From assembly GCA_038496445.1 (NCBI GenBank), contig JALMLS010000627.1, positions 62,001 to 126,000 of the forward strand: a stretch of 64,000 bases of DNA, given 5' to 3'. Both the position numbers and the translations under genes were made by a program. Below, piece after piece: positions 23 to 44,484 of the stretch. The notes under the pieces are model-generated. The model searched no databases, had not been told where the DNA came from, and was given only the letters and a program-made list of their open reading frames with translations. Each line of letters starts with the position of its first letter. Position 1 is the stretch's first letter. The stretch comes from Trichosphaerium sp. ATCC 40318. Its lineage: Eukaryota; Protista; Tubulinea.

Positions 23-893
23 TAATAAATAAATTGTTTATTTTCAAACTGTTTACAAATTACGTTTTACGAGCCCGAAGGTATTAATAGAAAGACCATA
101 ACACCTGTTTAGGCATACAGTTTGAACAAGATTCGTACCCGTACAAAGTTTCAACGCTATCATCTCAGGCTTCAAATACGTAAGCGCACAATGGTATAAT
201 TCTGTCCAAATAACAATACTAATCGATATTTAACATAAATTCACAATAATCTTTACCTTTTATTTTGATACTTTGGGCATATTAGCGACGTTATGGTTGT
301 ATTTTTCGTTGATACTTTACCTGTACTAGCAAAAAGACAATCTTGTCGTTTTAAGACGGCTCCCGGGTGCAATGTGGGTGCCCTCAGCGTCCAGTGTTAA
401 CGAACGGTGCTGGAATGTATCTCCTGGCCGTACCGGGGTTGTCGTGCTCAAGAGCCCGATAGGATGGAGAGCTACGGTACCTACAAGCCATGGTTCTTGC
501 ACAAACCGGGTGCTTGGATACGCTCTCCACGTTAACAGTTGTCGATTCCTTCGCCGATATACAAGGAAAATTGAAATACTTATGTACCATTCATTTGTGG
601 ATAAAAATAAAAAGTGGTATTGAGAAATGTTGATAATATACGATTTCAATCGCCCCACCATATTACATTGGTATTTATGAGCATGTTGTATCTTCGTTTT
701 ATTGACCAAAGGTAAATTCGAGGACAATTTCATCTAATTCACTGAAATATCCAGTCTAATACTCCAAATATGGATAATGCACATTTCAAAACTCTCAAAA
801 AGCCCTTGTACTACATATTTTCATGCGTATGAACGTATTAACGGTATCGATGATGTTTTGGTTCGCGAAACATGGCTAAACTATTAATTCTTT
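23..893 (-). repeat. Dispersed ~0.9-1 kb repeat, copy 1 (carries structured cassette type A)
   Basis: Near-identical in inverted orientation to 23255-24232; partial homology to 27807-28121 and 38385-39003. Confidence 0.9.
326..582 (-). ncRNA. Putative structured RNA cassette, type A (copy A1)
   Basis: Reverse complement of A2 at 23486-23742; stems, G-U wobble strand bias and T5 tract as described in the findings. Confidence 0.5.
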
Positions 894-17986: not shown

Positions 17987-18812
17987 TTACAACAAAGACT
18001 CCAAATCCAGTAACAACGAGGCAATTCGCTCGCAGTACCGAAGCAAATTTAAAAACCCAACGCAGTGCTCAAGGTTACACCTTTGAGCGTATATATCTTC
18101 GAACCGTCGCCGGTCAACAACTTGCCTCATAGCGGAGGCTATTTTTTTGTTTGGACGTATTTTTTTTGGGTCCCTAAACGCGGAGGGTGGCTTTCCCAGT
18201 AGCTGTCTCCAGTCCTTGAGAGTAAATACCGGTTTGTACGGTATACGCAAGTTTTTAGCTAAAGCCGCTGCAATTCTATGCAACTCATCGCTGAGGTGGT
18301 TACTTTGCCTCACGCCCACAAAAATTTTGAAAGTTCTCTCCTATACAAACATTAGCTGAAAAAGTAAAGTTGTTTTTTGAATACCGCTAGTGCGTCACTG
18401 TAGCCCTCTTTCATGGCTATCATTCCTTTGCTGGACAACGTTTTAGGGACAAATGACAATGTGCTAACGCGTACGATTTAAAAAGCAGCGGTTTTTTCGC
18501 TGCCGGCAGCTTGATGCCGTTCATAAACTGGTGCTTTACTTTCTTTTTAGAGGCATCCGCTAACTTGCGGCGTTTACTTGTTCTACATAGGCAGTGGTTA
18601 GTTGTTTTTTTTGACAAAAGTGTCAGATCCAATCTGTCTATAAATACACAACGGGCAGATAAGACGTGCAAAAGTGGTGCGTCTGTCTTGTTGACAATAA
18701 AAGTGTGACGTAATAGCGTTACAGCAAAAAAGCGTTGAGTCTCAACGAAACTAAAACAAACACAGCGAACTACGTACTTTTTGAGCGTGTCGTTTCCTCT
18801 TTGACGTTTCAT
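17987..18812 (-). pseudogene. Orphan protein family member 1 (frameshifted near 18450)
   Basis: Homologous to 34708-35580 and 40449-41019 (LA..L.IPY....TLKDWRQLL motif). Confidence 0.55.
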
Positions 18813-23254: not shown

Positions 23255-24232
23255 TAGTACAAGGGCTTTTTGAGAGTTTTGAAATGTGCATTATCCATAT
23301 TTGGAGTATTAGACTGGATATTTCAGTGAATTAGATGAAACTATCCTCGAATACCTTTGATCAACGTAAAACGAAGATACAAAACGCTCATAAACACCAA
23401 TGCAATGCAATGGAGCGAAGGAAATTGCGTTTTATCAACATTTCTCAATACCACTTTTTATTTTTATCCACAAATGAATGGTACATAAGTATTTCAATTT
23501 TCCTTGTATATCGGCGAAGGAATCGACAACTGTTAACGTGGAGAGCGTATCCAAGCACCCGGTTTGTGCAAGAACCATGGCTTGTAGGTACCGTAGCTCT
23601 CCATCCTATCGGGCTCTTGAGCACGACAACCCCGGTACGGCCAGGAGATACATTCCAGCACCGTTCGTTAACCCTGGACGCTGAGGGCTCCCACATTGCA
23701 CCCGGGAGCCGTCTTAAAACGACAAGATTGTCTTTTTGCTAGTACAGGTAAAGTATCAACGAAAAATACAACCATAACGTCGCTAATATGCCCAAAGTAT
23801 CAAAATAAAAGGTAAAGATTATTGTGAATTTATGTTAAATATCGATTAGTATTGTTATTTGGACAGAATTATACCATTGTGCGCTTACGTATTTGAAGCC
23901 TGAGATGATAGCGTTGAAACTTTGTACGGGTACACATCCAATTTTACCAAAGGTATTTACAGTGGCACTATCAAAAGGCAACGTTCAGCACGTAGAGGTA
24001 GCCCGCTTAGTTGGGACCACCTCTATCAACACCTTTTAAAGCAAAGGGATAACTGCTTCAAATTATAACTTCCGCTTACCAAGAACCATTTACAAAACGA
24101 GAACAGTGGTTTCTTAGTACGAATCTTGTTCAAACTTTATGCCTAACCAGGTGTTATGGTCTTTCTATTAATACCTTCGGGCTCGTAAAACGTAATTTGT
24201 AAACAGTTTGAAAATAAACAATTTATTTATTA
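23255..24232 (+). mobile_element. Dispersed repeat copy 2, inserted in a filamin-repeat exon
   Basis: Splits SGPGVFA / KVGSPNKF; near-identical to 23-803 apart from a 187 bp extra segment and a diverged upstream stretch. Confidence 0.75.
23486..23742 (+). ncRNA. Putative structured RNA cassette, type A (copy A2)
   Basis: GGAAT/ATTCC closing stem; TGGAGAGC/GCTCTCCA long hairpin; loop pairings TGTTAA-TTAAC and GTGCAA-TTGCAC; T5 tract. Confidence 0.55.
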
Positions 24233-26379
24233 CGGCAAATACTCCAGGACCAGATACAGCGCATTGAGATGGAGCAGTTTCTAAATACTTGTAAGACATT
24301 TCTGCTGAACAGTAAGTCACTCATTATCACCTTTAAGAACTGGTATTTTTAGAGGTGCACGTGGTGATTTGCCGTTGTCATCTCCAAATGATAAATTATG
24401 TGACGCTTCAGTTTGAGGTGTAACTGATACGGTACGAGAGCCATGGATTGTTGTAAACAGTGACTTAAAAAAGAACTAATAATGTAAAAAAACGATCCAA
24501 CGATTGATAGCATCTCTAACTTCCAAACGAGGTATTGTATTTCTCCTGTTACAGGATATTGTACAGATAATCCAACACCTATAGGTGTATTTAAGTGACC
24601 TGAAGGATCATCGCTTCTTTTGCGCCAAGTGAATAGCTTAGGCTTCATAGAGAGCTTTTCAGGAGAATCAACTTGGGAATGAAACCATTAGCACATAATG
24701 AAATACAGCAGAAAAAAATGAGAAGGTGATTGACGCAGCCTTAGACCTTTTTGGAGGTGCTGTTGTTTGCCCCAAAGGAGCATCTGCCTTTTCGAAAACA
24801 ACAGGCTCTAAACAAACATGAGTCAACAATCTAGTCGCTCCATTAAATCAAAAATGTACCTGTTGATGCATAGTCGCTTGGTTCTCCTGCAACTGGAATT
24901 TCCGTGGGAATCCTTTAAGTGGTTTTCCATTGCTCACGACATTAGCGGAACATGTACCAGGTGTGAAAGTGCAATAAGTGCCATCACCATTGTCCTGTAT
25001 TTGCTAGGTAAAGGCTGGCTTGTCTTAATACATACCTTTACTTCAACTGGAACTCGTGTGCCACCAACAGACACCACTGGTACAATATCATGTCCACCTC
25101 TTCGAATAGGTTTACCTGCGTCATCACGTGCGGCTACTTGTAGTGTAACAGGTGATCCAACTAAAGCTGCAGGTATGCTTCCTTTAGATCCTGACTTATC
25201 GGAGCTTAAAGCTATAAATCTTGTTAACAACAACAATATTGCTTAGAGTATTTGTACGTGGTGTGAAAGCAAGCTTCCGGATCACTAAACAATGGCTCTC
25301 CACCAACCATGACATCCATACTAACTTCTTCTGGTTGTTTTGGAGAGAATTTACCAGCAAAACAGCCATCTGGACACTTACATAATTTTTTTGTTTGGAT
25401 GAAAAGACAAGAAAGAACTCTGCTGAGCCAAACAAGAATACTTTAACATCATTTTCAGGTACATCCGCAATAGGATTCTCGAGAGTTATGCCAACTTTGT
25501 ATTCTTTATCACTAGGACTAGCATTTAATCCGTCACCACGACTCCATACAATAGCTATCGGACAATCTCTGACTCTTCTCGAATAACCAAAAACTTACAG
25601 CATGACACTTTTGCTTTGATCGGTTTAAGAAAAAGAGGTTCTCCAGCTCGTTCTACTTGGATATTATACTCCCCAGCAGTCCGAGGGTGGAACTTCACAC
25701 CGTAATACACTAGAATCAGGTTCAACTTCGTAAACCTCACCTTTTTGCTTCGAATAAGAATACAATTATGAATGATAGATAAACTACTCTTACCTCTTGG
25801 ATTATCAACTCCAGATATTACAGTAACCAATTCAAATGGATCAACTACACAACGTATACCTTGCGGGTCGGTAAGTGTAAATTGTCCAGGGTGGTATGGT
25901 TCAACGCCAGCCTTTGCTTTTTCTTCGGAAAAAGACAGTTAGTTTTTTTAAACTTCAGGTGCTCGGACATTTGATCCATAGCAAGCTTCTCTACTATCAG
26001 GTATGTTATTGCTTCTATAGAATACTTATAGGCTTCCTAGAAGCATATTATGTAGAGCTCTTAACTTTAATCCAACATTCGCCGGTAAACAAAACAGATT
26101 TCTCTTTTTTTTTTTGCCAAGTTGTTTTTAGCTTGTACCTTAGATGACACTATTTCAATATTACGTTTAAGTATTGAATACCTCACTGATGGACTTGTTC
26201 CGAAGATAGCCCAAATCATTAACCTTAGATTTTAGTATGTGTGCAAGAAAATAAAACCAGCTTTTCATAAGTACTAAAAAAGAGAAGGTATGAATAATAC
26301 AAGACGTGATTTTCTGTTTATTTAGCATAAAATATCTAGTACAAAGAGCGATGTATGGCTTTTGGTACACGTACGTAAT

Positions 26380-26700
26380 GTCACGACTAATTGAGGAGGT
26401 TAATTCCAATCTCAAGTGTTGTGGGAATGCAATACAAGAAAAAAGCCAGCTGAAGAAAAACCCGATATTAACAGACTTACTGTCAACATAGGAGACAACA
26501 AATACAATCCTAAGTTACCTAAAAAGTATGTAACAACTATCACGTGTTTTGAGGAAAAAATTCACATGGGGTTTTGTAGGGCTACGTTAGATGCAAGAAC
26601 ATATGCTTTTTGTTGGCGAAAAAAACGCAAGAGATCGTCCAAGTTTTGAAGAAATTGCTGAGATACTTAATCCTCTCATTGAAGCATCAGAGGATGCATC
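26380..26700 (+). pseudogene. Tyrosine-kinase-like C-lobe fragment
   Basis: VLWECNTRKKP...PKLP and NARDRPSFEEIAEIL; frameshifted, no intact N-lobe seen. Confidence 0.55.
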
Positions 26701-27806
26701 TGATAGAAGAGTCACAAAATTTCAATCATTTACTGCTACCAATTACCACCAACAGAATACTGGGCAGTGCGAACGAAGACAAGAGCAAAAAAGTGCAAAT
26801 GCCACCTTTTTTTTTTTGAAAAACTCACAAAGTTTCACGTTGCTGCTTCCGTAGCTCTTGAACACGTGTTCATATTTTAGTACAATATTGCTAATCTCAT
26901 GAATATAAAATATCAATGATTATGTTTTATAGTAAACCATGTGACAAAGCGGTAAGGGTTTTTTCAGAGAGCAAAATCTAAAGAGACGAAAGCAAGGCAC
27001 CAGGAAAGAAAAATTCACAAAAACGAGTAAGTGATTATATTAAGGCTCCATTTTCAAAGCGTATGAGCTTACGGTGGTATCCAAACAAATAGTAAGAAAT
27101 AGTTTGTGTTTTTTATTATAATCCTATCTGTAATTGCTCTAACTCCTTTTTTCTTGAAGCAGCTGGTCGTAAATGATGTATCTTTGGTTTTAGATGAAGA
27201 CGAAGGTGCATACACATATGTTTATGTAGGAACAGACGGTAAGACTACAAGAAGAAAGAAAGAACCTGTTTGAAAAGCTCCCACAAATTTTGTATGTTAC
27301 GATTCTTGTTTCGACATTGGCTTCGATATTAGAAAGGTATTTACATAGTTTTACATGCTAATTCGATTTACTAAAGTCTTCTTTGAACGAAGTAACGTCA
27401 CAAGATGGATAAGGAATATTTCAAACTATTTATTGAAGTACGGTACATGTTGTAAAAACTGAAACTAGCAATTTGTTTTTCACACTAAACCGTTCATTTG
27501 AAGTGCTACAGAATACGCAAAAGTGATAGCATAGTGCAACGGGACATTGAAATATTTTCTAGAGCGTAGAAGAGTAGACGCTGCTTTCCATTATATTAGG
27601 GGCTAAGTTAATTTCATAAATTGTAAGCAAAAACAGTTTAGAGTGTAAGCTAAATATTCATCCTTCTGAAGGTGTCAGTGAAGTAACACACCACAATAAT
27701 ACTTTCTTTATTCTTTGATGTCAATAGAAATGGCATTCAAGGCACTACTAAATGACACTAAACAACTTTTATACTCAAGTCACAAGAACCATTTTGAATA
27801 CTTCGA

Positions 27807-28121
27807 AAACAGAATTAATCGTTTAGCACCACGTTTCGCGAACCAAAACATCGCCGACACTGTTCTCACGCATGAAGAGAGATACTGCAAGGATTTGTAG
27901 GTGTTTTGATATGTGCATTATCCATATTTGGAGAATTGAACTGGATATTTCAGTGAATTAGATGAAATTGTCCTCGAATTTACCTTTGGTCAATAAAACG
28001 AAGATATAACATGCTCATAAACACCAATGTAACATGGTGGGGCGATTGAAATCGTATATTATCAACATTTCTCAATACCACTTGTTATTTTTGTCCACAA
28101 ATGAATGGTATATAAGTATTT
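27807..28121 (+). repeat. Upstream flank of the cassette repeat (copy B)
   Basis: Highly similar to the reverse complement of 574-893 and to 38385-38700. Confidence 0.85.
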
Positions 28122-28425
28122 GGAATAGTATTTACAAACAAGGAAGGAAATACATTCTAGCGAGTAAAAATGGGCAGTAGCTTACGAGACGCCGTGCAGG
28201 GCTAGGTTAAGCTACATATGCGCCATCTTCATCTGCAATGTTTCACCGCATTTGCCAATGGTTGACCCGTAGGTGTATATTCCAACACTGAGCATCCATT
28301 AGCCTGGCCAGTGTAAGGTATCACAAAGTAACATGATACATTGGCGCTCCACTGCACAACCCGTAAGACCTGGCAGAATATCAGCAGAGCCGGGGGAGCG
28401 CTGAACCTAACTCTCTTTTTGTTAG
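28113..28425 (+). ncRNA. Putative structured RNA cassette, type B
   Basis: Same layout as type A with different sequence: GTAGCTTA/TAAGCTAC, ACACTG/CAGTGT, GCGCTCC/GGAGCGC; AATGGG-TCCATT and GTGCAG-CTGCAC pairings. Confidence 0.55.
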
Positions 28426-28600
28426 TACAGCATGAACTTCTTACTTATCAATGTTTTAGAACAACTTTTTGCTTTATCACGCTTACTTGATTTTACTAAT
28501 TTACCCCACATACGTATTTCACATTCGGCTTGATTATGTTGTTTTTTCTTTATTTGAGGACTACAGCGAAATCATAATAAGATACCATACAATTCTGTTA

Positions 28601-28993
28601 ACTAGACAGAACAAGTAAACGATGGACACGTGTTTGGCAGAATTTTGTACAAGCAAAAGTTCCAGCCAGGCGTAAGACCCCCAAAAGCAACAAAAGAAGG
28701 TGATGGGGAGCACCGCGGTGGTTGAGGGCTTTCGTTGACGGTTATTTGTGGTTTTTGGGTTGTTGCACAGAAGGTGTGCACAAGAAGCGAGAATTATCGA
28801 CGCCTTAAGTCAATGAAGTTCTCGTTCTTCACGGGTGAGTCGTTTAAGTGAAAGCAAATGAACGCTTTGAAAGAAAAAACTAATCTTTATTGAATGTACA
28901 GTCTAGATAGAATTTCCTCAGTTGGTTACCTTACGTGAATTCATTTACAGAATTGAAAAGACCAGAATAAAATCCTGCTCATTTTCTTCCCCG
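28601..28993. repeat. Dispersed repeat, inverted and internally deleted copy of 19926-20469
   Basis: Direct sequence comparison. Confidence 0.85.
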
Positions 28994-29661
28994 TACTTAC
29001 CACCTAAAAGGTGTTAACCAGATAATTTAAGAGTGAATGGAAAATCCATTGTTTGTATTAGACGTAATCGCCACCAAATGCATAAAGGCTACAGCTTTTT
29101 TGGGCTAACGGGTCCTTAAGTTTCCTGCTTAGTTTATTACGTTTTAGATAGCTATTCTCACCTTCAAACTTTGCTATAATTCGACTGGTGGTGATATTAA
29201 TAAAACACATACGTATTATTGTCAGAGAGTGCCCAATAGATGTTAAAATCGCTATCTTTTCCACTCAAAAATCGAAATTGATTAAGGTGGTAGTTAAAAC
29301 ACGTGATAGATAATGACAACAATAAAAAAAAATGATATCGAGTTCACAACTTGCCCATTTCTGACTGTACCTTATTTAGTACTGTAGTGACATGCAAGTA
29401 AACAAGTGGTTGTGGTTCAAAATGTATGTTGAACATTTTTTAGCCCAAAAATGTCAAGAAGACAACAGTAGTCAATTAATATTCACGGCTAGATTGTCAT
29501 GCTCTATACACGTATAATCTACTTAGCACAACGTGTCAAGTTCAAAAAAGTAAATGTCAAAAGAACAAAATCAGTTTGTGCACGTTGTGATCAACCCTTT
29601 ATTGCTTTCGGTACCAAGGAAATAGTAGTAAAATAATAATAAAAAAAAGTTGTTTCATTTT

Positions 29662-31915
29662 TCACTTCTTTTGTGCGTACTGCGTAGACCAAAAGGGCGC
29701 TGTAGCACCCGAAGGAGCAGTACTAGGTGGTGGTGGTTGCTTGGGTTCTTTATCATCATAGTCAACGAGCTTTGAAGCCGCTGTTTCCTCAACAGAAGTA
29801 CGTCGCCTCTTATGATCAGGTCCATCATCACCACTTGGTTCTGAAGCTCTTTTGCTGCCTTAAAAATGAGTGAGCTTTAACAAACTCCAAACGGAGGAAG
29901 AAGAGAAGAATAAGAAAGAAGAACAAGGGTTGAGTGGCAACTAAATAACACGTCAACGTTTACAACACCCCTACAAACTACTGAAAAAAATAAATGGTAC
30001 GTGTTATACGCATAATACGAAGGTAAAAGACAGGACAACACATCCAACACTGCCACCAATAGAAAAGAAAACCGTAGGTCGTTATTCTTTCTCGTTGGTG
30101 TTAGTGTTCGTTTGCGTTGGCCTATCCTCTAATCTCCGCCTAGCGGCGCATCTTGCGTCCGAATAAACGGATTGCGTGGGTTATGAGTGTGTAGTATGGT
30201 CAAAACAACCTAAATTATGAGGAAAATGTTGTAAAAGGGCGACGTACCAACGGGCATTGAAGGTGGTGGCATTTTTGCTTTCTCTTTAGCTTCTTTGCCT
30301 GTTAATAATTTTTTTGGTGGAGCTGGCGGATCTGCAGGAGCCTCTGAAGGTGGTGGTGGAGGTACAGGCTGTTCTGAGCCAGCCTGTGTTGCAGCTGCTT
30401 GTGTAGCATTTGGATCAGCTTGTTGAGCTCCCTGTACGGCTGTTAGCGGATATTTGAACGCCTTCCATAAGACGTATTAGCGAACGTACGTATTGTTGAG
30501 CGTATGGGTTCTGGTAACCTTGATAATATCCTTGGTACGCAGTTGCAGCAGCGGCTGCTTCAGGAGTACCGGATTGCGCAGTGGCGTATTGTTGGTTATA
30601 GTAACCGTACTGTCCATACCCCTGGCCGTACCCTTGGCCATATCCACCATAGTAGTATTGTTGCTGTTGCTGTTGTTGCTGTTGCTGACGGTATGCAGCG
30701 ACGCTGAAATGTAAACGTTAAAAAAAATGAATGGAAAATAAAATTTTCATAAAAGTTGCTTTCGTACTGTTCGTCATATTGTTTTTTAACTGTAGCTACA
30801 AGATCTTTAGCCATGTCTTTTGCTCTTTGAAGTGAAGGCGCATTCGGTGCATGTATAAATATATGTAAAGGTTCAGTGCCCGCTGTTGCTGTGTTGTTTG
30901 AACCCAATCCGCGCATTTCAACTTTTGACTAGCAAAAAAAATTAATAACAAATAGCGAACAATGTAGTGCACACGAACCTGTGTTTGCGTAGCTATGTGA
31001 GCAACGTAGGATTTATTTGGTCCTCCCAACTTTCCTGGTAGATCAAATGAAGGGTCTGGATTGCTAGTAGAGTGTTAAATCAATGTTCAATAAAAAAGGG
31101 GTCCGTTGGAACAATTTCGAAAAAAACTGTTCAAAAGAAAGAACCTTGCTGGTTTTATTGGCGAGTTGTATCGCTGATACCTACCTTATATTTGTCCATA
31201 TCTTTCCAGTAAATCCAGTTGGTCTTAAAGGATCATTGGCAGCAGGACGGGGTCTTTGTTGCTGTGTATTTTGCTGAATGTAGTTCATTATAAATCTCTT
31301 TGCGTTGTCAACTGCCGCTTGCGATGTTGCAGAGATGTGGAGATGTAATTTCTTTTCTAGCCCAGGATTACCTCCAGGTGGCGTATAACAGCCGCGTGTA
31401 ATTACTGACGCTTGTGTATCTTCAAAAATCTGTTTGTTTCGTTAAAAAACATTCATTTGTACTTATTAAATTATTTTCGGCTTATTTGGCTCGCTATGAT
31501 GTCTACATTACGTTTGAGCGCGTACCTGTGATTGAGTTGTGCCTCTGCATAAATAAAAGCGAACTTGAGCATTACAGTCGTTTATGTCGATTTCGTGGGT
31601 GAATCCATCGCCACTGCCCTTTGTAGACAACATATTGTTCCACTTTTGAGCAATCTGTTGCGCACGAGCTGCTGGGTCATCAGCTAGCGTAAATTAGTAT
31701 TAATAAGCATCAAACTACTTCAGAAAGTCCTTTGCTTCTTCTTTGTAAAGCACTTTCAAAAACAAACTAACCTGGCGGTTCTGGAGGTGGTGCTGGTTTA
31801 TCTGCACCTTTTACATCCCAACCACGCCTACGTCTCTTTCTACAAAATGTGAGCCTCACAAAGCAATGAAAAATTATTGTTAACACGCAGTTTTACTAAT
31901 GTACCTCTCAGCCAT
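29662..31915 (-). CDS. KHDC4: KH-domain RNA-binding protein, KHDC4/BLOM7/RIK-like
   Basis: RRRGWD, EIDINDC..RFYLCRG.TQ, VITRGCY.PP...LHLHI, KLGGPNKSYVAHI, MRGLGS...EPLHIFI...AKDMAKDLVATV, Pro/Gln/Tyr-rich tail, terminal PFW. Confidence 0.85.
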
Positions 31916-32118
31916 TGTATTGGTATTTTGTAGACGTACTGAAAGCCTGGTTGGCACGAATTATGTGGACTCTCAGTGGCCGTACACCACAACATTGTGA
32001 CCCAGGTAATATTGGCCAATTAAGGAATGAGGATAATTCTTTCTACAATTGCACAAGAGGGTGCACATAAAGCATATGGTTCAAGCGTGAAGGCTTGCGC
32101 TCAAAACGGAGAGATAGA

Positions 32119-33893
32119 ATGACTCCGTCAACGGGGTATGGCCTTTATGAACAAGCAACAGGGTTTATAGCCGGCGCTTTTGGATATGGGTCCAGTTATA
32201 CACGGAGTACAAGCAACGCAAGCGAATTCACGTATTTCAATTTAAACAGGCAAACACGTACCGAGGACCCCTTGGCTTCGCTTCAAAACTTCCAAAAGCT
32301 TGAAATTGTTGGTACCGGGACATTTGGTCGCGTATATCTAGTGTACGTCAGGTTATATCATTCTGTGTAATTCCCCGTTAGGCAAAACAACTTAACAAGC
32401 CAATTCTACGCGCTAAAAGCATTGCCAAAATCCGTACTTGTCCAAAAAGATCAAGTACAACATATACAAGATGAAAAGCGCATTCTAAGCAATTTACGTC
32501 ACCCACAAGTAGTAAAGTTGCACGCATACTTCCCTGTAATCCTACAGTTCTCTAACTTTCTTCAATAGACACAAAACATACCAGGATAACCATTCACTAT
32601 ATATGCTCCTTGAATTCGTTCCTGGAGGAGAGCTATTTACATATTTAAGGCAAGAGAATCAGAAATAATTGTAATTCAAGAAAATCCTCGCGAAAAAATG
32701 TGTTTGCTGACATTTATCCTCTAGACAAGAACAAAAGTTTTCAGAACACGTTGCCAAATTTTATGCAGCGCAGATAGTCCTTATACTAGGTACGTAGTGA
32801 AAACTAATGAGAAGTCCGGTCGCGTAGCGTCTTTTTATTTTTGTTCTTTTCTCGCTTAGAACTACACGTCCTTTTTTTTTACGCATGTTTAGAGCATCTA
32901 CACTCCATAGGCATCGCCTACCGCGATCTCAAACCAGAGAATATTTTGTGTACGTTATTAGCCTAATCCCAACTCAAAAAATTATAAAAACAACCGAAAT
33001 CGCCGTTTAGTACTCATTATTCTTCTGATAGTGGATGAGAACGGATACGTTAAAATAACTGACTTTGGTTTCGCAAAGTTTGTGTCGGATAGGTACAATT
33101 TTCTCTTCTACCTAACACCTCGCTTACACAGCTTGGGAATACTGATTTATTTCTTATTTTTTTTTCAGGACTTGGACAATGTGCGGAACACCGGAGTACC
33201 TCGCGCCCGAAGTCATTTTAACAAAAGGACATGATAAAGCTGTATGTAAAGAAGATATTATATCAATTGTGATGTACTTTTAGGTCGATTGGTGGGCACT
33301 GGGAATTCTTATTTATGAGATGTTGCATGGATTTCCTCCGTTTCATGGGTTATCGCCTATGGACTTGTATAATGAGGTATTAACAAAGCCTGTGCGGTGC
33401 CAAGACCATGTGAGCCCTGTAGTAAGCGATTTGATACTACAGTTACTCTCTCGAGATAAATCAAGGAGATTGGGTGCGTCTTTCGACCATTTCCCATCTT
33501 GTCAGCGTTAATAAGTGTTTTATCAAAAAAATAAGCACGGCCGTTTCTTTTTTTACTTAATTTTCGTTTAGGTAATAGAGCTGGTGGTGTTGCTGAACTA
33601 AAAGCTCATCGATGGTTTGCTGTACGTATTTAAACGGAGTTATTTTACCCGTCGACCGGAAACTTTTTCAACTTTCGAGAATAGTTCAGAAAGGTTCTTT
33701 GCGTACTTACATGTTATGTTAGGGTGTTGACTGGCATAAACTCGAGAGGCGGGAGCTTAGACCTCCGTTTGTACCTCGTGTGGAGTGGGCTGGAGATACT
33801 GGTAATTATGCTGACTACCCTGACTCCGAAATGATGATGGTGGATCAAAGTAATTCAAAGGACGAATATGCCCGATACTTTGAGGGATTTTAA
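32119..33893 (+). CDS. PKA catalytic-subunit/PRKX-like AGC kinase
   Basis: [40 protein letters not shown], terminal FEGF-stop (FxxF). Confidence 0.92.
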
Positions 33894-34707
33894 ACCAAAA
33901 GAGAAAGCCGTTGATGAAGCATCCACCAGGACACCAAAAAAAAGAAGACAATTGTAGATAATTGTAACAGTTTCGTGGTTACAAAAAAAAATTGAAAAAA
34001 AAAAATTTGCTTGTACAGTTTGTAAAACAATTAAAAATAATGACAAAACAGAGGTTGTTACATGTGTATTATAAAAAAGCATCATAACAATGGCTATTTC
34101 ATTTTTTTTTCTTTCAAGTCTACTGGAAAATTCTCTATTAGATAAAACGTTGCGTTGTGGCGCTATTAAACAACGCGTACATACCTTCGTTTTAATAAAG
34201 ATCAATTACGAAAAATACTTGTGAGATATTCTAAAACTAGTTTCGCGTTAATTACCTTTCTCAGCCAACTAACACGCTTACACGTTTCACGTTAATTTCC
34301 TTTTTCAGTCCAAAAAAGAATGTGACAGGATTCCATTGGATTCTCTCGCTGACAAAAGCAATGAATTCGATGATGTAAACAAGCAACTTTGAAAGGTTTT
34401 TGAGCTTTAGTACAGAGATTAATGACATCTCTCATGAACGTTATGTGTTCTGTGAATTATACAGCAAGCTTTAGTAAACACGCTATTTTCCTACACCTAA
34501 GGCCACGTCTCTCTTACACGTATTCTCATCTTTCATGTACCTGTATCAAAGGTAATGCTAGGAACCCTATTCAATACTATACTGATACAGCACGTAGCAG
34601 TCCAACGGAAACTACCAACGTCGTCACAGCTCTGTACGTGTTCTTCAACTTCAATCCTACAGCTTCTTCACTAGTATCTCTTGGCTAAGCTGTTATTCGT
34701 ACGTTGT

Positions 34708-35580
34708 TTAAAATCGCCGCAGGCTAACAGCTTTTATGTAACGAATTGCAGAGGTGATTACTTGCCTTTGTTTGTTTGCTAGAATCATTGAGCTATCCAT
34801 AAACCAGCTGGGCTTTCCCAGTAGCTGCCTCCAATCCTTTAACGTATATACCGGTTCATACGGTATGTGCAATTTTGTGGCTAAAAGGTTTGCTATTCTA
34901 TGCAAAGAGTCACTGAGATGATTTGTTTGTTTCATGCCAACAAAAATCTTAAATGCTCGCTCCTCTAGAGCTTGCTATAACCCTCTCTGAGGGCAATCAT
35001 TCCTTTCCTGGACAATGTTTTAGGGATAAATAATGGCAATACGTACGATTTGAACAGCAGCGGTTTCTTCGCTGCTGGGAGCTTTATCCCGTTCATAAAT
35101 AGATGAACCTCCTCCTTTTCGAGCTTTGTTGTAGCTAAAAGGTTTGCTATTCTGTGCAAAGAGTCACTGAGGTGATTTGTTTGTTTCACGCCAACAAAAA
35201 TCTTAAATGCTCGCTCCTCTAGAGCTTTGCTATAACCTTCTTTAAGGGCAATCATTCCTTTCCTCTCGACAATGTTTTAGGGATAAATAATGTGCCAACG
35301 TACGATTTGAACAGCAGCGGTTTTTTCGCTGCTGGGAGCTTTATCCCGTTCATAAATCTCTTCCTTTTTTACATTCATCCGCTACCTTGCCGTTTGTGAA
35401 TAAGTGTTTTTCCTCCTTTGTAGAGGTATGTTTTAGGGACAAATGACATTGTGCTAACACGTACGATTTGAACAGCAGCGGTTTCTTTGCTGCTGGGAGC
35501 TTTATGCCGTTCATAAATCTCTTCCTTTTCAGATTTATCCGCTACCTTGCGGCGTTTATTTGTTCTAAATAATGGTTAGC
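34708..35580 (-). pseudogene. Orphan family member 2, scrambled by nested tandem duplications
   Basis: Three copies of the FMNGIKLPAAKKPLLFKSY-coding segment and two of KIFVG..QTNHLSDSLHRIANLLA. Confidence 0.7.
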
Positions 35581-36596
35581 GATTTGTCAGAAGACAACCT
35601 GTTTTACCTTACGGGAAAACAGAACTAGACAACTAAGCCTCAAGTGCCTATGTACATATTTGGTCACTGGAATGAGCTGCTCCCAGCACTGACTAGTTGT
35701 ACCAAACAGAAATACAAACAGCACTTGAGGTGTTTACTGACAAATAAATCGAACTACTACTTACCAAACCTTAACTCCACACTTTTACAATTAAGACATA
35801 ACTATTAAACCTTTATTCCTTTCAATGTTTGCAACTTCTGCTGTTTTTGTTCTGATGTCCCACCCGCGCCTATAAAAACACTATCAAACGCGAACGGAAG
35901 AATACAATAATACAACAGCCTGTGGTGGTCACTCACTTACAAACAGATAGCAAATATCGCACTTAATAAAAACTCTCCGTGTTTTCTTTCCCGTGTAAAA
36001 TTGCTGAAAATTGTTGAGTTTTCCGTAGTGGTTTCTTTGCCTTTTTGTTAACACGTCATCAGTACCAAGGCCAGAATTGTCAGTAAACAACGAAATGGTA
36101 TAGTGTGATAAACTGTAAATCAGTTTTTGAGACTTAAAAAGATAAGCGTTGCCAGTACGCGAAAGAAACAGTTTGTTGTTGATTAAATCTTCGCTCAACT
36201 GGCAAAGTTTGTTTCAGTGGTTTAACTAAACGTACAATTAATGCTGTGATGTCCTCCAAAGTGTCTTCAAAAGCGACAGCCGGCAGTACTGAAATGTGAT
36301 TAACACTAAACAGATAGGTGTCGTTGTCAGTCAACGCGTAAGTACACTATGTCTGACGACGCCAAGACAAACAATAATTCTTATATTCGTGTACTATGGC
36401 TTCAGACTGTTTCCACTTTTCAGTTCTGGTGCACACATTGTAGGAAACGGAGTATACTCTAAAGGTGTAACTATTTTCAATACCAAACTATAAACAGTTT
36501 TTCTGAATTAGAACGAGAATATTAAAACAGCGCCTCCGCTTATGTACGCTACAGTATTTGTTCAAGGTCCAAAATGGGATTGCATTAAACACTCAC

Positions 36597-36945
36597 GTAG
36601 TGGTAATACCAAAGGCACGTGTTTTTTGAGGAGTGATGAAAAGAATGGATTACAACAGGTCTGGTATGATAATGGCCAAATAAAATCTTCTGTAAAAACG
36701 ATCCAATCTTATACTTCAACATCTTCTTTCATAATACATTTAAGACTCAACTCGCCATCAGGTCTCCAACATTGAAGTATTCCCTCTTTTTTACCATCTT
36801 TATAATTACATTGTGAAGCAAGTTGTCCATTAAGATTGGATCGTTTTTACAGAAGATTTTATTTGGCCATTATCATACCAGACCTGTTGTAATCCATTCT
36901 TTTCATCACTCCTCAAAAAACACGTGCCTTTGGTATTACCACTAC
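36597..36945. repeat. Perfect 115 bp inverted repeat with a 119 bp spacer
   Basis: 36597-36711 is the exact reverse complement of 36831-36945. Confidence 0.95.
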
Positions 36946-37613
36946 TATACCACCATTTCAAATCACCTTCTTTCTTACCATTGTAGTAAGTGCATTGTCT
37001 CGAAAGAACACCATTATCGTGAAATTGTTGATATTGTCCTTATGGTTTATTATTCTTTGCTGTGTATCGCTCTTGTATTTCGCCATTTGAGTGCCATTTA
37101 TCGCTTAAAACCTCTTCCTTATCACGTTTGTAATACTTTTGTACTCGCAGTTGGCCATTCTTTGAATACACCTTCTCTGTTATTGTTTTTTAGAAAAGTA
37201 CTTCATTTGAAGCGCTCCTGTCTTGTACCATTGTTTGGTTTTACCATTTCTCATACCATTACGCGTTCTACAACGTATATGACGTTTTGCATCATCGTAA
37301 AAGTGCTGATAAACGCCATGGCAGTCTCCGTTTTTCTTTGTGAATTTTTCAGTCAGTGCACTGTCTTTGTTGAATACTTGACATAACCCGTCTTCTTTCC
37401 CTCTCTGTACGAGTATATGGTCGCTAAGGTTCCATTACTATACCAAGTTTGGCCATAGCCACCTTGTTAAAGTACCATTGATAGTTTTGTATGTTCGGTT
37501 CTATCTACAAAGCATATTTGGTGTAATAAACGCAAAGTTATTGGTTCAGTTCTCCGGAAATGTATTTGCACAAATATTGCAATGAAGTGTAACGTGCTTT
37601 GACTTATCACCAT
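36712..37613 (-). pseudogene. Degenerate MORN-variant repeat gene
   Basis: Broken repeats KNGLQQVWYDNGQIKS, WYSNGTL, WYENGK; frameshifts. Confidence 0.7.
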
Positions 37614-38384
37614 TCCCAATTTTGGTAGATGAACATATATGTGTGTATGTGACAACTAGTGCTATACTGGTTGGTTACTTACAGGAATTGATCTAATATG
37701 GAAACAAAAAATTTAAACAAGTAAGAACCTAAACACCCTGGTAGCGAAGCTTGAGACCCTTCAAAGGCCTCTCATCCATGTTGGCTGTAGTACTGGACAG
37801 TTTTTTTGTTGGTGGTATTTGTATCATTGAAGGCGTTGCCGATGTAGAATGGTGTCAACAGGTTTTACATGTGCTTTTTAACATTTTGTTTTCGTTCTAT
37901 AGTTGAAAAGTTGAGTATGGACGAAGGTATCACTGTTGTATCCACCCCAAGCAAAAAACCATGGTGGTAGAATAGTAACACCTGTATCCACCCCAACCAA
38001 AACCGCCCTTACGTAGAAAGGGGATTTTTCTGATCCTAAAAACTTGCATTTATTGAAAACTGAATTTGAGGATCCATTTTTGCGTTAAACACGTGTACAA
38101 GATATACAAACCTTAACTCGTGTTGCGTTTGAACCACCGAGACGTTAAGTCGTCCTCCAACCAGTCTCGTTGCTTTATACTATATTGGTTCAACCTAGAG
38201 GTTCATCTAACGTGACTTCACAGGAGGTTTCCTGGTTCTTGTAGATACTTTGTAACTTGTAGTACTATGACGATTTCACCTTTCCGAATATCCACCATAC
38301 CTCTTTTGTATTGCAAAACAGCATACAAAACGACTTAATGTGTTGAAGGCAATAAAATGAAGTAACCAATAAACTACAAGCGGA

Positions 38385-39003
38385 AAACAGAATTAATCGT
38401 TTAGTACCACGTTTAGCGAACCAAAAACATCGCCAACACCGTTCTCACACATGAAAATAAATAGTGCAAGCGTTTTTGAGAGTTTTGAAATGTGCATTAT
38501 CCATATTTGAAGTATTGGACTGGATATTTCAGTGAATTAGATGAAACTATCCTCGAATACCTTTGATCAACGTAAAACGAAGATAAAAAACGCTCATAAA
38601 CACCAATGCAATGCAATGGAGCGAAGGAAATTGCGTTTTATCAACATTTCTCAATACCACTTTTTATTTTTATCCACAAATGAATGGTACATAAGTATTT
38701 CAATTTTCCTTGTATATCGGCGAGGAATCGACAACTGTTAACGTGGAGAGCGTATCCAAGCACCCGGTTTGTGCAAGAACCATGGCTTGTAGGTACCGTA
38801 GCTCTCCATCCTATCGGGCTCTTGAGCACGACAACCCCGGTACGGCCAGGAGATACATTCCAGCACCGTTCGTTAACACTGGACGCTGAGGGCACCCACA
38901 TTGCACCCGGGAGCCGTCTTAAACCGACAAGATTGTCTTTTTGCTAGTATAGGTAAAGTACCAACGAAAAATACAACCATAACATCACTAATTATGCCCA
39001 AAG
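38385..39003 (+). repeat. Dispersed repeat copy 3
   Basis: Near-identical to 23255-23797, with extra upstream homology to copies 1 and B. Confidence 0.9.
38692..38947 (+). ncRNA. Putative structured RNA cassette, type A (copy A3)
   Basis: Near-identical to A1 and A2 (GAGGAA, 1-nt deletion). Confidence 0.5.
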
Positions 39004-39007
39004 AACA

Positions 39008-39278
39008 TAAGTATTTCACTTTTGTTCATACATCAGGAAGGAATTACGTACAGCAAAGACGCCTAACTATATAGGGAGGGTTGTTAGCAGTAGCACGATG
39101 CGGGGTTTCGCCGTAGGACCCCGCATCGGCTACACCACCACAATGCACCAACCACACTGGCTATGCATTCATTCCAGCACTGTCATTAACATTGCCAGTG
39201 CTAAGAAGTACCCACTGCGCACCCGTAACACCAAAGGCTGGGGGGAACCAACTCCTAACAAGACCATCTTTTTGTTGG
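39008..39278 (+). ncRNA. Putative structured RNA cassette, type C
   Basis: TAAGTATTT-N20-GAAGGAA; CGATGCGGGGT/ACCCCGCATCG, AGCACTG/CAGTGCT; TGTTAG-TTAACA and CGTAG-CTGCG pairings; T5 tract. Confidence 0.55.
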
Positions 39279-42392: not shown

Positions 42393-43151
42393 ATGAATAA
42401 TATCTCAATGAACGTTTTAGACATTCCACGCGAACTACAAAGATCCTTGTGTGCTCTAGACGCGGAAGCATACGCCAAGTTTAATGTCTTGTCGAAACGT
42501 GCTGCCAGTACGCACTACAACCCAAACCTTGAAAAGCATGGGTTATGGCTCGACTGGGACAAGAATGGACGTCTCGTATCACAAACTGCAATGGTCGATG
42601 GTAAACGACACGGCGAACACAAAGAGTGGCACGATAATGGAGTCCTTAAGGCAGAGGTAGTGATGGTTAATGACGAGCAAAATGGTAATCGAAAGGAGTG
42701 GTACCGTTGTGGACAAATCAAGTCACACAGCGTTATGGTTAAAGGTAAAAAGCATGGTAAAGCCATGGCATGGTTCGAAAACGGACAACTCGAGGAAGAA
42801 GCAGAGATGGTTGAGGGTAAACTAAATGGTTTGTTCAAAGAGTGGTACGAAAATGGCCAACTGTACCAACGTGCCTTATTTGTTAATGGTAACCGACACG
42901 GAGAAAGCATAGCCTGGCATGAAAATGGCAACCTCAGCGCACGCTACCAGTGTGCTCATGGCAAAGTTCACGGAGAAAACGAACTATGGTATGAGAATGG
43001 TACAAAGATGAGACAAGAAACATTTAAAAACAATGTGCACCATGGTATTTGCTCAGACTGGAGTATGTACAGTCAACTCCAAACTGAGTTTATGTACCAA
43101 AATGGAAAGGTGATTTGGGCACGCGTTGAAGGTGTCACGATTTTGTACTGA
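42393..43151 (+). CDS. Intronless MORN-variant (YwqK-like) repeat protein with F-box-like N-terminus
   Basis: 252 aa ORF with about eight repeats of W(Y/H)ENG.L......G..HG; N-terminal LDIPRELQRSL. Confidence 0.85.
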   Translation: MNNISMNVLDIPRELQRSLCALDAEAYAKFNVLSKRAASTHYNPNLEKHGLWLDWDKNGRLVSQTAMVDGKRHGEHKEWHDNGVLKAEVVMVNDEQNGNRKEWYRCGQIKSHSVMVKGKKHGKAMAWFENGQLEEEAEMVEGKLNGLFKEWYENGQLYQRALFVNGNRHGESIAWHENGNLSARYQCAHGKVHGENELWYENGTKMRQETFKNNVHHGICSDWSMYSQLQTEFMYQNGKVIWARVEGVTILY

Positions 43152-43422
43152 ACAACCTGAGGCACCTAGATGATCTCATCTCTTGGGAGGATATGAACAT
43201 CTGTCCTGATCGGTAGGTCACAGAGCAAGTGTGGGATTCGTTTACAACACGATTGCAACAAGCACGATTGTAACAAGTCAAAGCATGTTTTTACGTAATA
43301 AAAGTAGCTTCTATTTTGTACAAAAGTTTTGGGTTGGTGCGGTGATTTCTGCTGTTGCGTAGGTTGCATATAGGTCTTGGTTAGTTGGTACTACATGGCA
43401 CACTCTGTAGCAAAAGGTTATT

Positions 43423-43504
43423 CGACACGAGCAGGATTTGAACCTGCGCGGGCAAAGCCCAATAGATTTCTAGTCTATCTCCTTAACCACTCGGACATCG
43501 TGTC
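43423..43504 (-). tRNA. tRNA-Ser(AGA)
   Basis: GACACGA/TCGTGTC acceptor stem, ATAGA-CTAGAAA-TCTAT anticodon arm, long variable arm GGGCTTTGCCC, GGTTCAAATCC T-arm, discriminator G. Confidence 0.97.
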
Positions 43505-44484
43505 ATGCGATGGAAAAGAGTAAGGTAGCGAATAATCCGCTCCAGCAAGGTAAGCAAGGCTCTACAACGATTGCTAACACAAAACAAACCACCAACCACA
43601 TACCAATGCTATCTATAACTACAAAAACCCATGGTATAACCAGAAAAAACAAAGAACGGTTTGAGGGTTGCTTAACCACAAACAGTCACAATTCATATTT
43701 CCACATGGAATCCTTTCTAAATACCAATGTACTCAACGCCAAACATTGTTTTATTTGTTACTCTCACTATGCAAAAAAACTCAGAATGGTTTGAGTTTTC
43801 CCTTATTTTTCTTAGCCGGTTATAGCCTGTCCTAAAACTAAAACAAAATAGCCTACCACCTCTAGATGTAAGTATATTTACTGCGTAAATATCAGTACTT
43901 GGGTGACTACGAGCGACGAAAGGTTTTGTAGTACAAGTCTAAAACAAGTAATACAAGCTCATTGATTTAATCACATTAGGACTAGTAACTGAGAAAACCA
44001 AATTGCTTGTTAAGCTGCTACGACAAAACTTTCAAACTGTTTCAAAAAAAAAAAAAATTAAGGTAACGTCATTACAGGTAGTGATTATTTTGTACCTATT
44101 GTATATTGCCATCATTCAAACCTATGCAACTACAAAAAAGACAAACCTGTAAAAAAACAAGAGATTTGGGCACGTGATTTTGTACAGAAAGTATGTCCAA
44201 CAAACAAGACATGTTATTCACACAAAAAACAAGTCTCCATTTAAGTACCGTAAGGAAAAAAAAGAAGCACTACACCACTTCGGAATGGGTACGTCACAAT
44301 ACTCCAGGAGCAAACATGAGTTAGTCTTTGCTTTACGTTGCAGTATGCTAGTTCTGATCTTTTAAAATTCGAGTGAATTTACAAGGTTATTTTAAGGAAA
44401 TAGGAAATCAATCACAACTTGATTAAAAAGTCATTATTTTTCATCCCAACAACCCTCAGCAACAAGTGAAGCCGAAAAAACCTA

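Follow-up and report, generated by a model that had tools for sequence, protein, structure and literature searches.

A family of probable small RNA genes has been found in Trichosphaerium sp. ATCC 40318. The favoured explanation, with a probability of roughly 0.55, is that these cassettes encode non-coding RNAs, likely made by RNA polymerase III, whose two-domain fold is locked by a kissing contact and which serve as scaffolds of a lineage-specific ribonucleoprotein (RNP). The cassettes have a common gene anatomy and one coding strand, and their helices and kissing contact persist among very different types.

Five cassettes lie in the window, the stretch of 64,000 nucleotides analysed here, and reading of the sequences placed each of them where the initial annotation had located it. 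A1 lies on the minus strand; A2, A3, B and C, with all features given for them below, lie on the plus strand. RNA gene A1 (331-555, type A, about 225 nt) was read directly from GCGAAGGAA to its T5 run; it is 99% identical to A2 by BLAST and matches model R1 at 331-420. RNA gene A2, also of type A, occupies 23513-23737 and ends in a T5 run at 23733-23737 followed by G. The third type A gene, A3 (38719-38942), has a 5' end shorter by one A, GCGAGGAA. Gene B (28140-28420, type B, about 280 nt) scores 117.5 bits with R1. Gene C (39035-39273, type C, about 239 nt) lies 65 nt past the T-run of A3.

The cassettes first described are real, and the family proved larger than claimed. About 20 intact copies occur in the genome, along with several fragments; besides A, A', B and C they include a new type D, which makes at least five types. 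The RNAs range from about 225 to 290 nt. As had been noted, the types can barely be aligned in the RNA body, and BLAST matches between types cover the promoter only. Those of type A stem from recent segmental duplication of stretches about 0.8 kb long. Since several copies are fragmentary or lack a promoter (L025, L043/L044, L017, L045 and L046), part of the family is decaying.

All intact copies carry a TATA-like box, ATAAGTATTT, found at 23485-23494 (A2), 28112-28121 (B), 38691-38700 (A3), 39007-39016 (C) and, on the minus strand, 583-574 (A1). The RNA is predicted to start about 27-30 nt downstream, at (G)GAAGGAA; for A2 the start is put 27-29 nt 3' of the box, a spacing taken by analogy with the genome's U6 genes. 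The sequence TCCACAA, which resembles the DUSE promoter element, and ATAAGTATTT stand ahead of every intact copy, the layout of a type-3 promoter. Every intact copy ends in T5-G, as in termination at a T-run.

A longer block precedes most genes of the window. That of A2 (23255-23484) comprises the repeat families D1, I1, I4 and I8, with TCCACAA at 23467-23473, and contains a distal element, GAAATGTGCATTATCCATATTTGGAGTA..TGGATATTTCAGTGAA, about 75 nt long, which occurs at no fewer than 43 places in the genome (103 candidates). The block of B (27891-28111; repeats D1 and I4; TCCACAA at 28094-28100) is 94% identical to that of A1 and 77% to that of A2. The A3 block spans 38462-38690, with TCCACAA at 38673-38679. 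The A1 block (584-813, minus strand; repeats I1, I4, I5 and I8) is chimeric, its distal part being B-like and its proximal part A2-like. Gene C of the window has the TATA-like box only, without the long upstream block.

The combination of DUSE-like box, TATA-like box and U6-like T5-G stop points to RNA polymerase III. Judging from these signals, the cassettes are most likely transcribed by this enzyme from an external U6-type promoter. Such a promoter would be composed of the distal block, TCCACAA and ATAAGTATTT, with transcription beginning 27-30 nt after the TATA-like box and stopping at T5-G.

The genome's own small RNA genes provide a reference. In its U6 genes (17 matches), ACCACAA is followed by a TATA box, the start lies 27 nt past that box, and the gene closes with T7-G; its U2 genes (33 matches) lack a T-run and are polymerase II genes. 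The cassettes resemble the U6 genes in the CCACAA-containing box, the TATA box, the gap of about 27 nt from TATA to start, the T-run-G stop and the many dispersed copies. The two differ in that the DUSE-like box stands 18 nt from the TATA-like box in the cassettes and 33 nt from it in U6, or about 45 nt (to the predicted start) compared with about 60 nt from the start. Unlike the U6 genes, the cassettes carry an additional conserved upstream block of about 150-200 nt, and their RNA body lacks the U6 motifs (ACAGAGA, AGC and the internal stem-loop) and has no Rfam match to U6 or U6atac.

Because 230 nt of upstream promoter are shared, the copies must have arisen by duplication at the DNA level. 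The external U6-type promoter, the T-run stop and the carriage of the promoter along with the copies argue against a retroposed mobile element. Likewise, a SINE or other retroposed polymerase III element was rejected, since the T-run end has no A tail and ARAGORN found no tRNA-like part. The initial annotation had offered a ribozyme, an RNP scaffold or a mobile-element RNA as the identity of a selected tertiary fold; gene anatomy thus disfavours the last by retroposition, while the selected fold itself, with one covarying loop-loop contact in five types, is borne out.

The order of elements in the RNA is as first described. GAAGGAA comes first, with its GGAA(U)/(A)UUCC pairing, then the long hairpin 1, hairpin 2 directly after AUUCC, stem 3 around CAC..UGC..ACCCG, and the CTTTTTG end. 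The 5' end of the RNA pairs with its middle and not with its 3' end. In A2 this helix, P1, is formed by GGAAU at 23519-23523 and AUUCC at 23652-23656 (equivalents of the latter at 28279-28283 in B and 39171-39175 in C). Its pairs differ by type: GGAAU/AUUCC, GGAAA/UUUCC, GGAAAAUA/UAUUUUCC and GACGGG/CCCGUC.

Pairing in P1, in hairpins 1 and 2 and in stem 3 is maintained through compensating changes. Among 21 distinct sequences of the 3' domain, 89% of cells are paired, compared with 33-51% when the partners are slid; both sides have changed in 11 of the 23 pairs, and none of 500 shuffles reached the covariation score. With the kissing helix counted in, the type C structure as a whole has 92.7% of its cells paired, as against 29-48% when slid, and P1 is paired throughout (100%). 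Minimum-energy folds of A and B recover all claimed helices. That of C recovers hairpins 1 and 2 only; for its P1 and stem 3 the support comes from the pair counts. The stability of the folds relative to shuffles is unremarkable (z = -1.7 for A, -0.1 for B and -3.0 for C). Compensating double changes across types that can no longer be aligned indicate selection on the RNA. The reported excess of G-U pairs on the strand ending in U5 was also recovered (40 G-U cells against 10 A-C cells), and this asymmetry marks one strand as coding.

The two domains are connected by a long-range pairing between the loop of hairpin 1 and the loop of stem 3. In A2, GUGCAA (23566-23571), the whole six-nucleotide apical loop of hairpin 1, faces UUGCAC (23696-23701) in the loop closed by stem 3; the corresponding strands are GUGCAG (28194-28199) and CUGCAC (28352-28357) in B, and CGUAG (39112-39116) and CUGCG (39215-39219) in C. 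In five types the strands are exact six-base Watson-Crick complements: GUGCAA/UUGCAC, GUGCAG/CUGCAC, GUACAG/CUGUAC, GCACAG/CUGUGC and GUUCAG/CUGAAC. Three positions covary, and each complement occurs in about 4% of shuffled 5' domains. The 5' strand falls in a hairpin loop in 13 of 14 folded sequences, and in A, B and D it makes up the whole apical hexaloop. This pairing was annotated at the right positions, and its covariation is far beyond chance.

A second long-range pairing, between the strand before hairpin 1 and the loop of hairpin 2, had been proposed as well. Type A shows it strongly (8 bp), and B and the window's copy of C have it as well, but it is absent from three other type C genes, and the loop positions used in A and B are not equivalent. 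Because this pairing is not conserved, the description of the RNA as doubly pseudoknotted holds for the contact of hairpin 1 with stem 3 and fails for the other half.

One alternative is that the cassettes make no working RNA at all. They might instead be a dispersed DNA repeat or a dying pseudogene family, perhaps once mobile, whose structure was inherited from an ancestor. The truncated and promoter-less copies fit such an origin, as do the recent segmental duplications of type A. However, compensating double changes have kept the helices and kissing contact intact in types that can no longer be aligned with one another, the G-U asymmetry singles out one strand, and intact copies retain a full promoter and stop signal. 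Terminal repeats, target-site duplications and A-rich tails are absent, as are reverse transcriptase and transposase among the neighbouring genes. This explanation is highly improbable.

A compact two-domain fold with a covarying tertiary contact could also belong to a ribozyme or to the catalytic RNA of an RNP, in which the unpaired conserved nucleotides, positioned by the kissing contact, would form the active site. Some unpaired motifs are indeed invariant across types whose helices have diverged. Yet tertiary contacts are normal in non-catalytic RNAs too, no conserved cleavage-site context is visible, and the copies stand alone rather than within introns or repeats that require processing. 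No Rfam ribozyme matched, including HDV-like, GIR1, twister, hatchet, pistol and RNase P. For the double-pseudoknot ribozymes (HDV-like and GIR1), there is in addition only one conserved long-range pairing in the cassettes. Catalysis of this kind is very doubtful.

Short motifs raise the possibility of a regulator or decoy in splicing. Types B, C and D bear, visibly in the alignments, a 5'-splice-site-like CCCGUAAGA, a branch-site-like (Y)CUAAC and a pyrimidine tail, and the 5' AAGGAA could pair with the UUCCUU of U12-type branch sites. The snRNA genes are also highly multiplied in this genome (33 matches for U2 and 17 for U6). Against this, type A has neither GUAAGA nor CUAAC, one type D copy retains stem 3 without GUAAGA, and the 5' AAGGAA is already engaged in P1. 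There is no Rfam match to U11, U12, U4atac or U6atac, and motifs this short may arise by chance. A role of this kind would be a long shot.

The cassettes had been called an unrecognised family, and comparison with Rfam 15 (4227 covariance models) agrees. At gathering scores, the sole match in the whole window was a tRNA-Ser. A relaxed search (E up to 10 or 1) of cassettes A3 and C, cassette B and the type D loci returned only chance-level miRNA and snoRNA matches of 14-19 bits. The family is distinct from the genome's own SRP, RNase P, MRP, U2 and U6 genes. SRP RNA was rejected because the cassettes gave no SRP match and canonical SRP genes (127-130 bits) are present at C243, C278 and C155. 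RNase P and MRP were rejected in the same way: contig C4 carries a canonical RNA gene for each, next to one another, scoring 111.5 bits for MRP and 120.6 bits for RNase P. The cassettes resemble these two in size, in the U6-type promoter that RNase P and MRP RNAs have in many eukaryotes and in a purine-rich 5' GGAA-type long-range helix that recalls P4; they differ in lacking P1-P3 and the CR-I/CR-V consensus, and in that their ends do not pair with each other. No homologue was found outside the genome: 120 metagenome matches to one pattern were all rejected by the model, as were 43 matches in a viral collection to one of two patterns, the 28 matches to the second pattern lying outside the model test.

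In the favoured explanation, the polymerase III transcript would fold into two domains. The 5' domain would be a multi-helix junction closed by P1 (5' GGAAU/AUUCC) and bearing the long hairpin 1. The 3' domain would contain hairpin 2 with its conserved loop UCAUUAAC, an optional additional hairpin and stem 3. A six-base kissing contact from the apical loop of hairpin 1 to the internal loop of stem 3 would lock the domains together. If the RNA is expressed, the oligo-U 3' end may be held by La or a LARP-type protein. The whole would then act as a compact protein-binding scaffold of a lineage-specific RNP, like Y, vault, 7SK and Dictyostelium Class I RNAs, and the invariant unpaired motifs (5' GAAGGA, UCAUUAAC, CCACUG..CACCCGUAAGA and AACAAGA) would be its contact surfaces. 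The neighbouring genes gave no hint of function, and a protein-bound scaffold is the best guess, made by analogy.

A bolder proposal is that types A-D, an 'E' family and other orphan RNAs behind the same distal block form one fast-diversifying, lineage-specific superfamily of 40-100 polymerase III RNAs of 250-290 nt. These would share a core in which a 5' single strand or hexaloop docks into a 3' hairpin loop, and would serve an undescribed catalytic or guiding RNP machine, deriving specificity from type-specific loop complementarity rather than from passive scaffolding. This is speculative and quite unlikely.

If expressed, the cassettes would constitute a new structured RNA family of Rfam quality: the gene model is clear, a tertiary contact covaries, and a single genome supplies about 20 paralogues. 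The paralogues amount to a natural mutate-and-rescue series for the kissing-loop contact.

Y, vault and 7SK RNAs act through protein binding. Like the cassettes, they form small multigene families with an oligo-U 3' end and change rapidly in sequence around a preserved fold. The cassettes might be very divergent homologues of a known type-3 polymerase III RNA (7SK-like, vault/Y-like or telomerase-type) not yet found in Amoebozoa. In general terms their size, U6-type external promoter, oligo-U end and small multigene family fit, and such RNAs are known to outrun sequence models by divergence. Still, no Rfam model of this kind matched the cassettes at E up to 10. The bulged end stem that binds Ro, the vault panhandle with internal A/B boxes and the 7SK GAUC hairpin are all absent: no GAUC..GAUC 5' hairpin is seen, and the 5' end pairs mid-RNA instead of forming a panhandle with the 3' end. 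With 7SK, which had no Rfam match, the U tail is the only shared feature. A telomere-template run, as in a telomerase-type RNA, is lacking. A family of about 20 genes that fall into five or more very different types also does not resemble a single-copy essential RNA. Such homology is unlikely.

The Class I RNAs of Dictyostelium are 42-65 nt long and have a single stem that joins their ends, whereas the cassette RNAs, at about 225-290 nt, have two domains and a kissing contact. The cassettes do not belong to Class I, as the RNAs compared measure 224-286 nt, their ends are unpaired with each other and there is no similarity in sequence or by model. In Dictyostelium, small RNA genes transcribed by either polymerase have the DUSE about 60 nt upstream, and T-runs have been interpreted as polymerase III stops (PMC7919456). 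The end stem of Class I RNAs is accompanied by an adjacent 11-nt motif, and their molecular mechanism is still to be worked out (PMC7919456). In Trichosphaerium, a DUSE-like box placed like the Dictyostelium DUSE, together with a TATA box, would drive a set of polymerase III RNAs that is much larger and more varied than these short ones. Like Class I (PMC7919456), the cassettes form a lineage-specific amoebozoan family of tens of genes that combine a DUSE-type promoter with a T-run stop and are probably transcribed by polymerase III, and in both families paralogues of diverse sequence share a conserved short motif.

The five cassettes of the initial annotation lie exactly where it placed them. 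They comprise three copies of type A (A1, 331-555 on the minus strand; A2, 23513-23737; and A3, 38719-38942), one of type B (28140-28420) and one of type C (39035-39273). The window belongs to contig C74 in a 70-Mb genome; its GC content is about 38%, and it has few long open reading frames (ORFs). The A copies are 97-99% identical to one another, and the sequences of B and C differ. On the 5' side of each cassette stands ATAAGTATTT, with the conserved body 27-30 nt downstream. The body opens with GCGA(A)GGAA in type A and with GGAAGGAA in types B and C, and it ends in CTTTTTG.

The family is larger than these five cassettes. The whole assembly was searched with BLAST, with R1, a covariance model built on the RNA's 3' half, and with a promoter pattern. 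Type A occurs on contigs C74 (three copies), C372 and C194, its 251-nt variant A' on C13 and C42, and an A-like copy, 71% identical, on C106. Type B is found on C74, C548, C32, C254, C18 and C183, and type C on C74, C254, C49, C2 and C81. A fifth type, D (260-263 nt), occupies two loci 21 and 36 kb past the window and has the same promoter and architecture; together with the cassettes of the window it makes up a single family that uses one type of promoter. Copies that are truncated or lack the promoter lie on C99, C81/C439, C463, C74 (at 239k) and C349, and C45 carries two possible extra copies. The genome thus holds about 20 intact genes, plus decaying ones. Exact matches to the promoter pattern number 16 genome-wide, every one at a family gene.

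Since the promoter travels with the copies and A tails are absent, the family spread by DNA duplication, not by retroposition. Among the window's ten largest ORFs there is no match to a reverse transcriptase, transposase or nuclease; the matches obtained are MORN, LRR, ARM and TELO2-like. An example is a 252-codon ORF with MORN_2 repeats at 42393-43151 (+), E = 1e-25. The window also contains a perfect 115-nt inverted repeat (36597-36711/36831-36945, spacer 119 nt), which overlaps a 187-codon ORF without a Pfam match. Repeat families D3-D6 (18189-18528; 34811-35518) consist of units of about 95-105 nt in 3-4 copies with 62-96% identity, each unit containing a GC-rich palindrome (CAGCAGCGGTTT..CGCTGCTGG).

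The family had been called unrecognised, and an Rfam search of the cassettes agrees, giving no match at any threshold. At gathering and E-value thresholds, no Rfam family matched the window (tRNA-Ser apart), the cassettes, the type D loci or twelve other promoter-bearing loci. The window's sole Rfam or ARAGORN hit is a tRNA-Ser(AGA) with a long variable arm at 43422-43505 (-), and ARAGORN found no tRNA-like part in the cassettes. One rival explanation is a divergent known RNA. Type C has 13 nt that presumably resemble human RMRP; they lie in a hairpin loop and are missing from the other types. Canonical genes for SRP RNA (three copies), RNase MRP RNA, RNase P RNA, U2 and U6 all lie elsewhere in the genome, and for this reason both an SRP reading and an RNase P/MRP-like P4 reading were dropped. 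The RNase P and RNase MRP RNA genes adjoin on contig C4 (221083-221379 and 221636-221925, both minus), about 250 nt apart. No pairing joins the two ends of the cassette RNA, which excludes panhandles of the Y or vault type, and neither the GAUC hairpin of 7SK nor a telomere template was found in the cassette RNAs.

Another rival is a splicing decoy, for which an intron mimic (GUAAGA..CUAAC) speaks; the mimic was rejected because it is missing in type A and in one type D copy. A coding reading fails as well: a 135-codon ORF runs over A1 and A2, a 1-nt deletion breaks it in A3, and B and C lack it. Homologues outside this genome were not found. Degenerate-motif scans (one metagenome, two viral) gave chance hits only; the model rejected all 163 stretches tested, 120 from the metagenome scan and 43 from one of the viral scans, and the other viral scan gave 28 hits.

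When A and B are folded to minimum energy, P1 (the 5' GGAAU with AUUCC), the long hairpin 1, H1b (a second hairpin of the 5' domain), hairpin 2 and stem 3 all appear. The corresponding fold of C contains hairpins 1, H1b and 2, and lacks P1 and stem 3. Stability relative to shuffled sequences is ordinary (z = -1.7, -0.1 and -3.0 for A, B and C), so that the case for structure rests on covariation. For the 3' domain, an alignment of 22 R1 matches, of a kind biased towards the structure of the model, has 89.1% of cells paired, compared with 33-51% when the partners are slid. Here 11 of the 23 pairs changed on both sides, and the covariation score (0.314 vs 0.136) was reached by none of 500 shuffles. 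For type C alone, in a full-length alignment whose structure included the kissing helix, pairing covers 92.7% of cells, compared with 29-48% for slid partners, and six pairs are compensatory, two of them within the kissing helix.

The core of P1, GGAA/UUCC, is unchanged in A, B and C, and the flanking helix varies. Type A has GGAAU/AUUCC and the A-like copy GGAAA/UUUCC; B has GGAAAUACA/UGUAU-AUUCC, one C copy has GGAAAAUA/UAUUUUCC, and D has GACGGG/CCCGUC. The claim that G-U wobbles favour the strand ending in U5 was likewise confirmed: 40 cells are G-U and 10 are A-C, which fixes that strand as the coding one. Compensating changes and the covarying kissing contact bear out the proposal of a selected tertiary fold, and the 5' domain and the contact that locks the domains together are under selection as well. 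Another rival reading, in which the cassettes are dead repeats, has the decaying copies on its side and these compensating changes against it. The cassettes carry polymerase III-type signals and form a gene family; the fold of their RNA, one tertiary contact included, is under selection on one strand.

This contact joins the loop of hairpin 1 to the loop of stem 3. The pairing is real, with perfect Watson-Crick hexamers in A, B, two C copies and D. Stem 3 and the 5' domain carry UUGCAC and GUGCAA in type A, CUGCAC and GUGCAG in B, CUGUAC and GUACAG or CUGUGC and GCACAG in the two C copies, and CUGAAC and GUUCAG in D. In two other C copies 5 bp remain (CUGCG with CGCAG or CGUAG), and type A' has 6 bp with a one-base bulge. 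A perfect hexamer arises by chance in about 3.5-4.5% of shuffled 5' domains; over five independent types the joint chance is therefore about 1e-7, before the location in the apical loop of hairpin 1 is counted. All the 5' sites lie in that apical loop, and when A, B and D are folded to minimum energy the loop consists of exactly the six pairing bases. Three positions of the helix covary, with seven pair types between them. MAFFT misaligned hairpin 1 of B and C when all types were aligned at full length, so the evidence for the helix across types comes from scripts and from the count within type C.

The other pairing, between the strand before hairpin 1 and the loop of hairpin 2, holds for A, B and the window's C but is not a feature of the family. 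A1 and A3 have 8 bp of it, while A2, B and the C copy of the window have 5-7 bp, and A and B use different halves of the loop. It is absent from three other C genes, where, judged by eye, the 5' strand ahead of hairpin 1 seems to make local hairpins in shifting registers. Of the two pseudoknots in the "doubly pseudoknotted" description, then, the one between hairpin 1 and stem 3 stands and the other is not family-wide. In type C, the H1b loop (CACUGGCUAUG) is complementary over 11 bp to hairpin 2's 3' strand (39118-39165 with 39186-39200 in the window; the same at loci L011, L013 and L030), with dG of -15 to -19 kcal/mol. This complementarity may provide an alternative conformation or switch.

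Upstream of the cassettes, about 230 nt of sequence is common to types A and B and to type C at other loci. Between A and B this block is 77-94% identical, while BLAST cannot align the bodies; the promoter is far more conserved than the body. The block ends in TATCCACAAAT, 18 nt ahead of a TATA-like box. Its distal 75 nt (GAAATGTGCATTATCCATATTTGAGTA..TGGATATTTCAGTGAAG) recur in at least 43 further places in the genome (103 candidates), at some loci doubled, with copies about 170 nt apart. At 10 of the 12 such loci read, it is followed by TATCCCACAA, a spacer of about 33 nt, a (G)TATAAAAG-type TATA box that varies slightly, and other GC-rich RNAs with T-run ends. A 220-nt contig from X1, an RNA run of another organism, matches the middle of the block (38558-38625) at 93% before diverging; this element of the promoter may be present in a related organism. 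The X1 contigs match only the tRNA, this piece and probable exons in the window, and are uninformative on expression.

A second orphan family, 'E' (about 270 nt), stands behind the same distal block, TATCCCACAA and TATA box. Its loci are L070 (1501-1565 region), L073, L075, L077 and L048 (2640-2990), on contigs C142, C229, C56, C5 and C74 (at 163.1k). Its shared layout on the 3' side reads ..UGCAGCACC-hairpin-..GAAGG-hairpin with loop CGURACA-tail-U run. Family E also has an invariant GCUGUUACCUUGUUAGGGUA, whose UGUUAC complements the CGURACA loop (GUAACA; GUGACA in L077). It has no Rfam hit and is probably distantly related to types A-D. Three further GC-rich RNAs of 280-380 nt with T-run ends have the same promoter architecture (L067/L068, L072 and L074; contigs C490, C151, C115 and C137) and no Rfam match at E up to 5.

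As for function, an RNA would be transcribed from the cassettes, La or LARP-type proteins would bind its oligo-U end, and it would most likely act as a compact protein-binding scaffold. Its contact surfaces would be the invariant unpaired motifs: 5' GAAGGA, AUUCCAGCAC, the hairpin-2 loop UCAUUAAC, CCACUG..CACCCGUAAGA and the tail AACAAGA..UCUUUUU. That the promoter is more conserved than the body would fit heavy transcription with structure-preserving drift. A further rival reading is a ribozyme.

The Dictyostelium upstream element DUSE has the consensus [AT]CCCA[CT]AA. It is located some 60 nt ahead of the start, serves small-RNA genes of both polymerase II and polymerase III, and T-runs are read as polymerase III stops (PMC7919456). 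In this genome the genes for spliceosomal RNAs are present in very many copies, and the U2 hits span 41-151 bits, so that many divergent U2 variants coexist. The U6 genes (17 hits) have ACCACAA followed after 33 nt by TTTAAAAAT, start 27 nt past the TATA box and end in T7-GCAC, and the U2 genes (33 hits) have the DUSE-like box and no T-run. As these controls fit, the cassettes are best read, from their promoter and terminator signals, as U6-type polymerase III genes with external promoters. The 20-21 nt from the TATA-like box to GGAAGGAA are a promoter spacer, not a guide. Past the T-run, 10 nt (G-YTAGTACAG/A) are kept between A and B, whose bodies cannot be aligned, and in decayed copies too (23738-23750 and 28421-28433; downstream flanks of L006 and L045); they may belong to the terminator or be a signal for processing. 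The cassettes differ from U6-type genes in that the DUSE-like box lies about 45 nt, not 60 nt, ahead of the predicted start.
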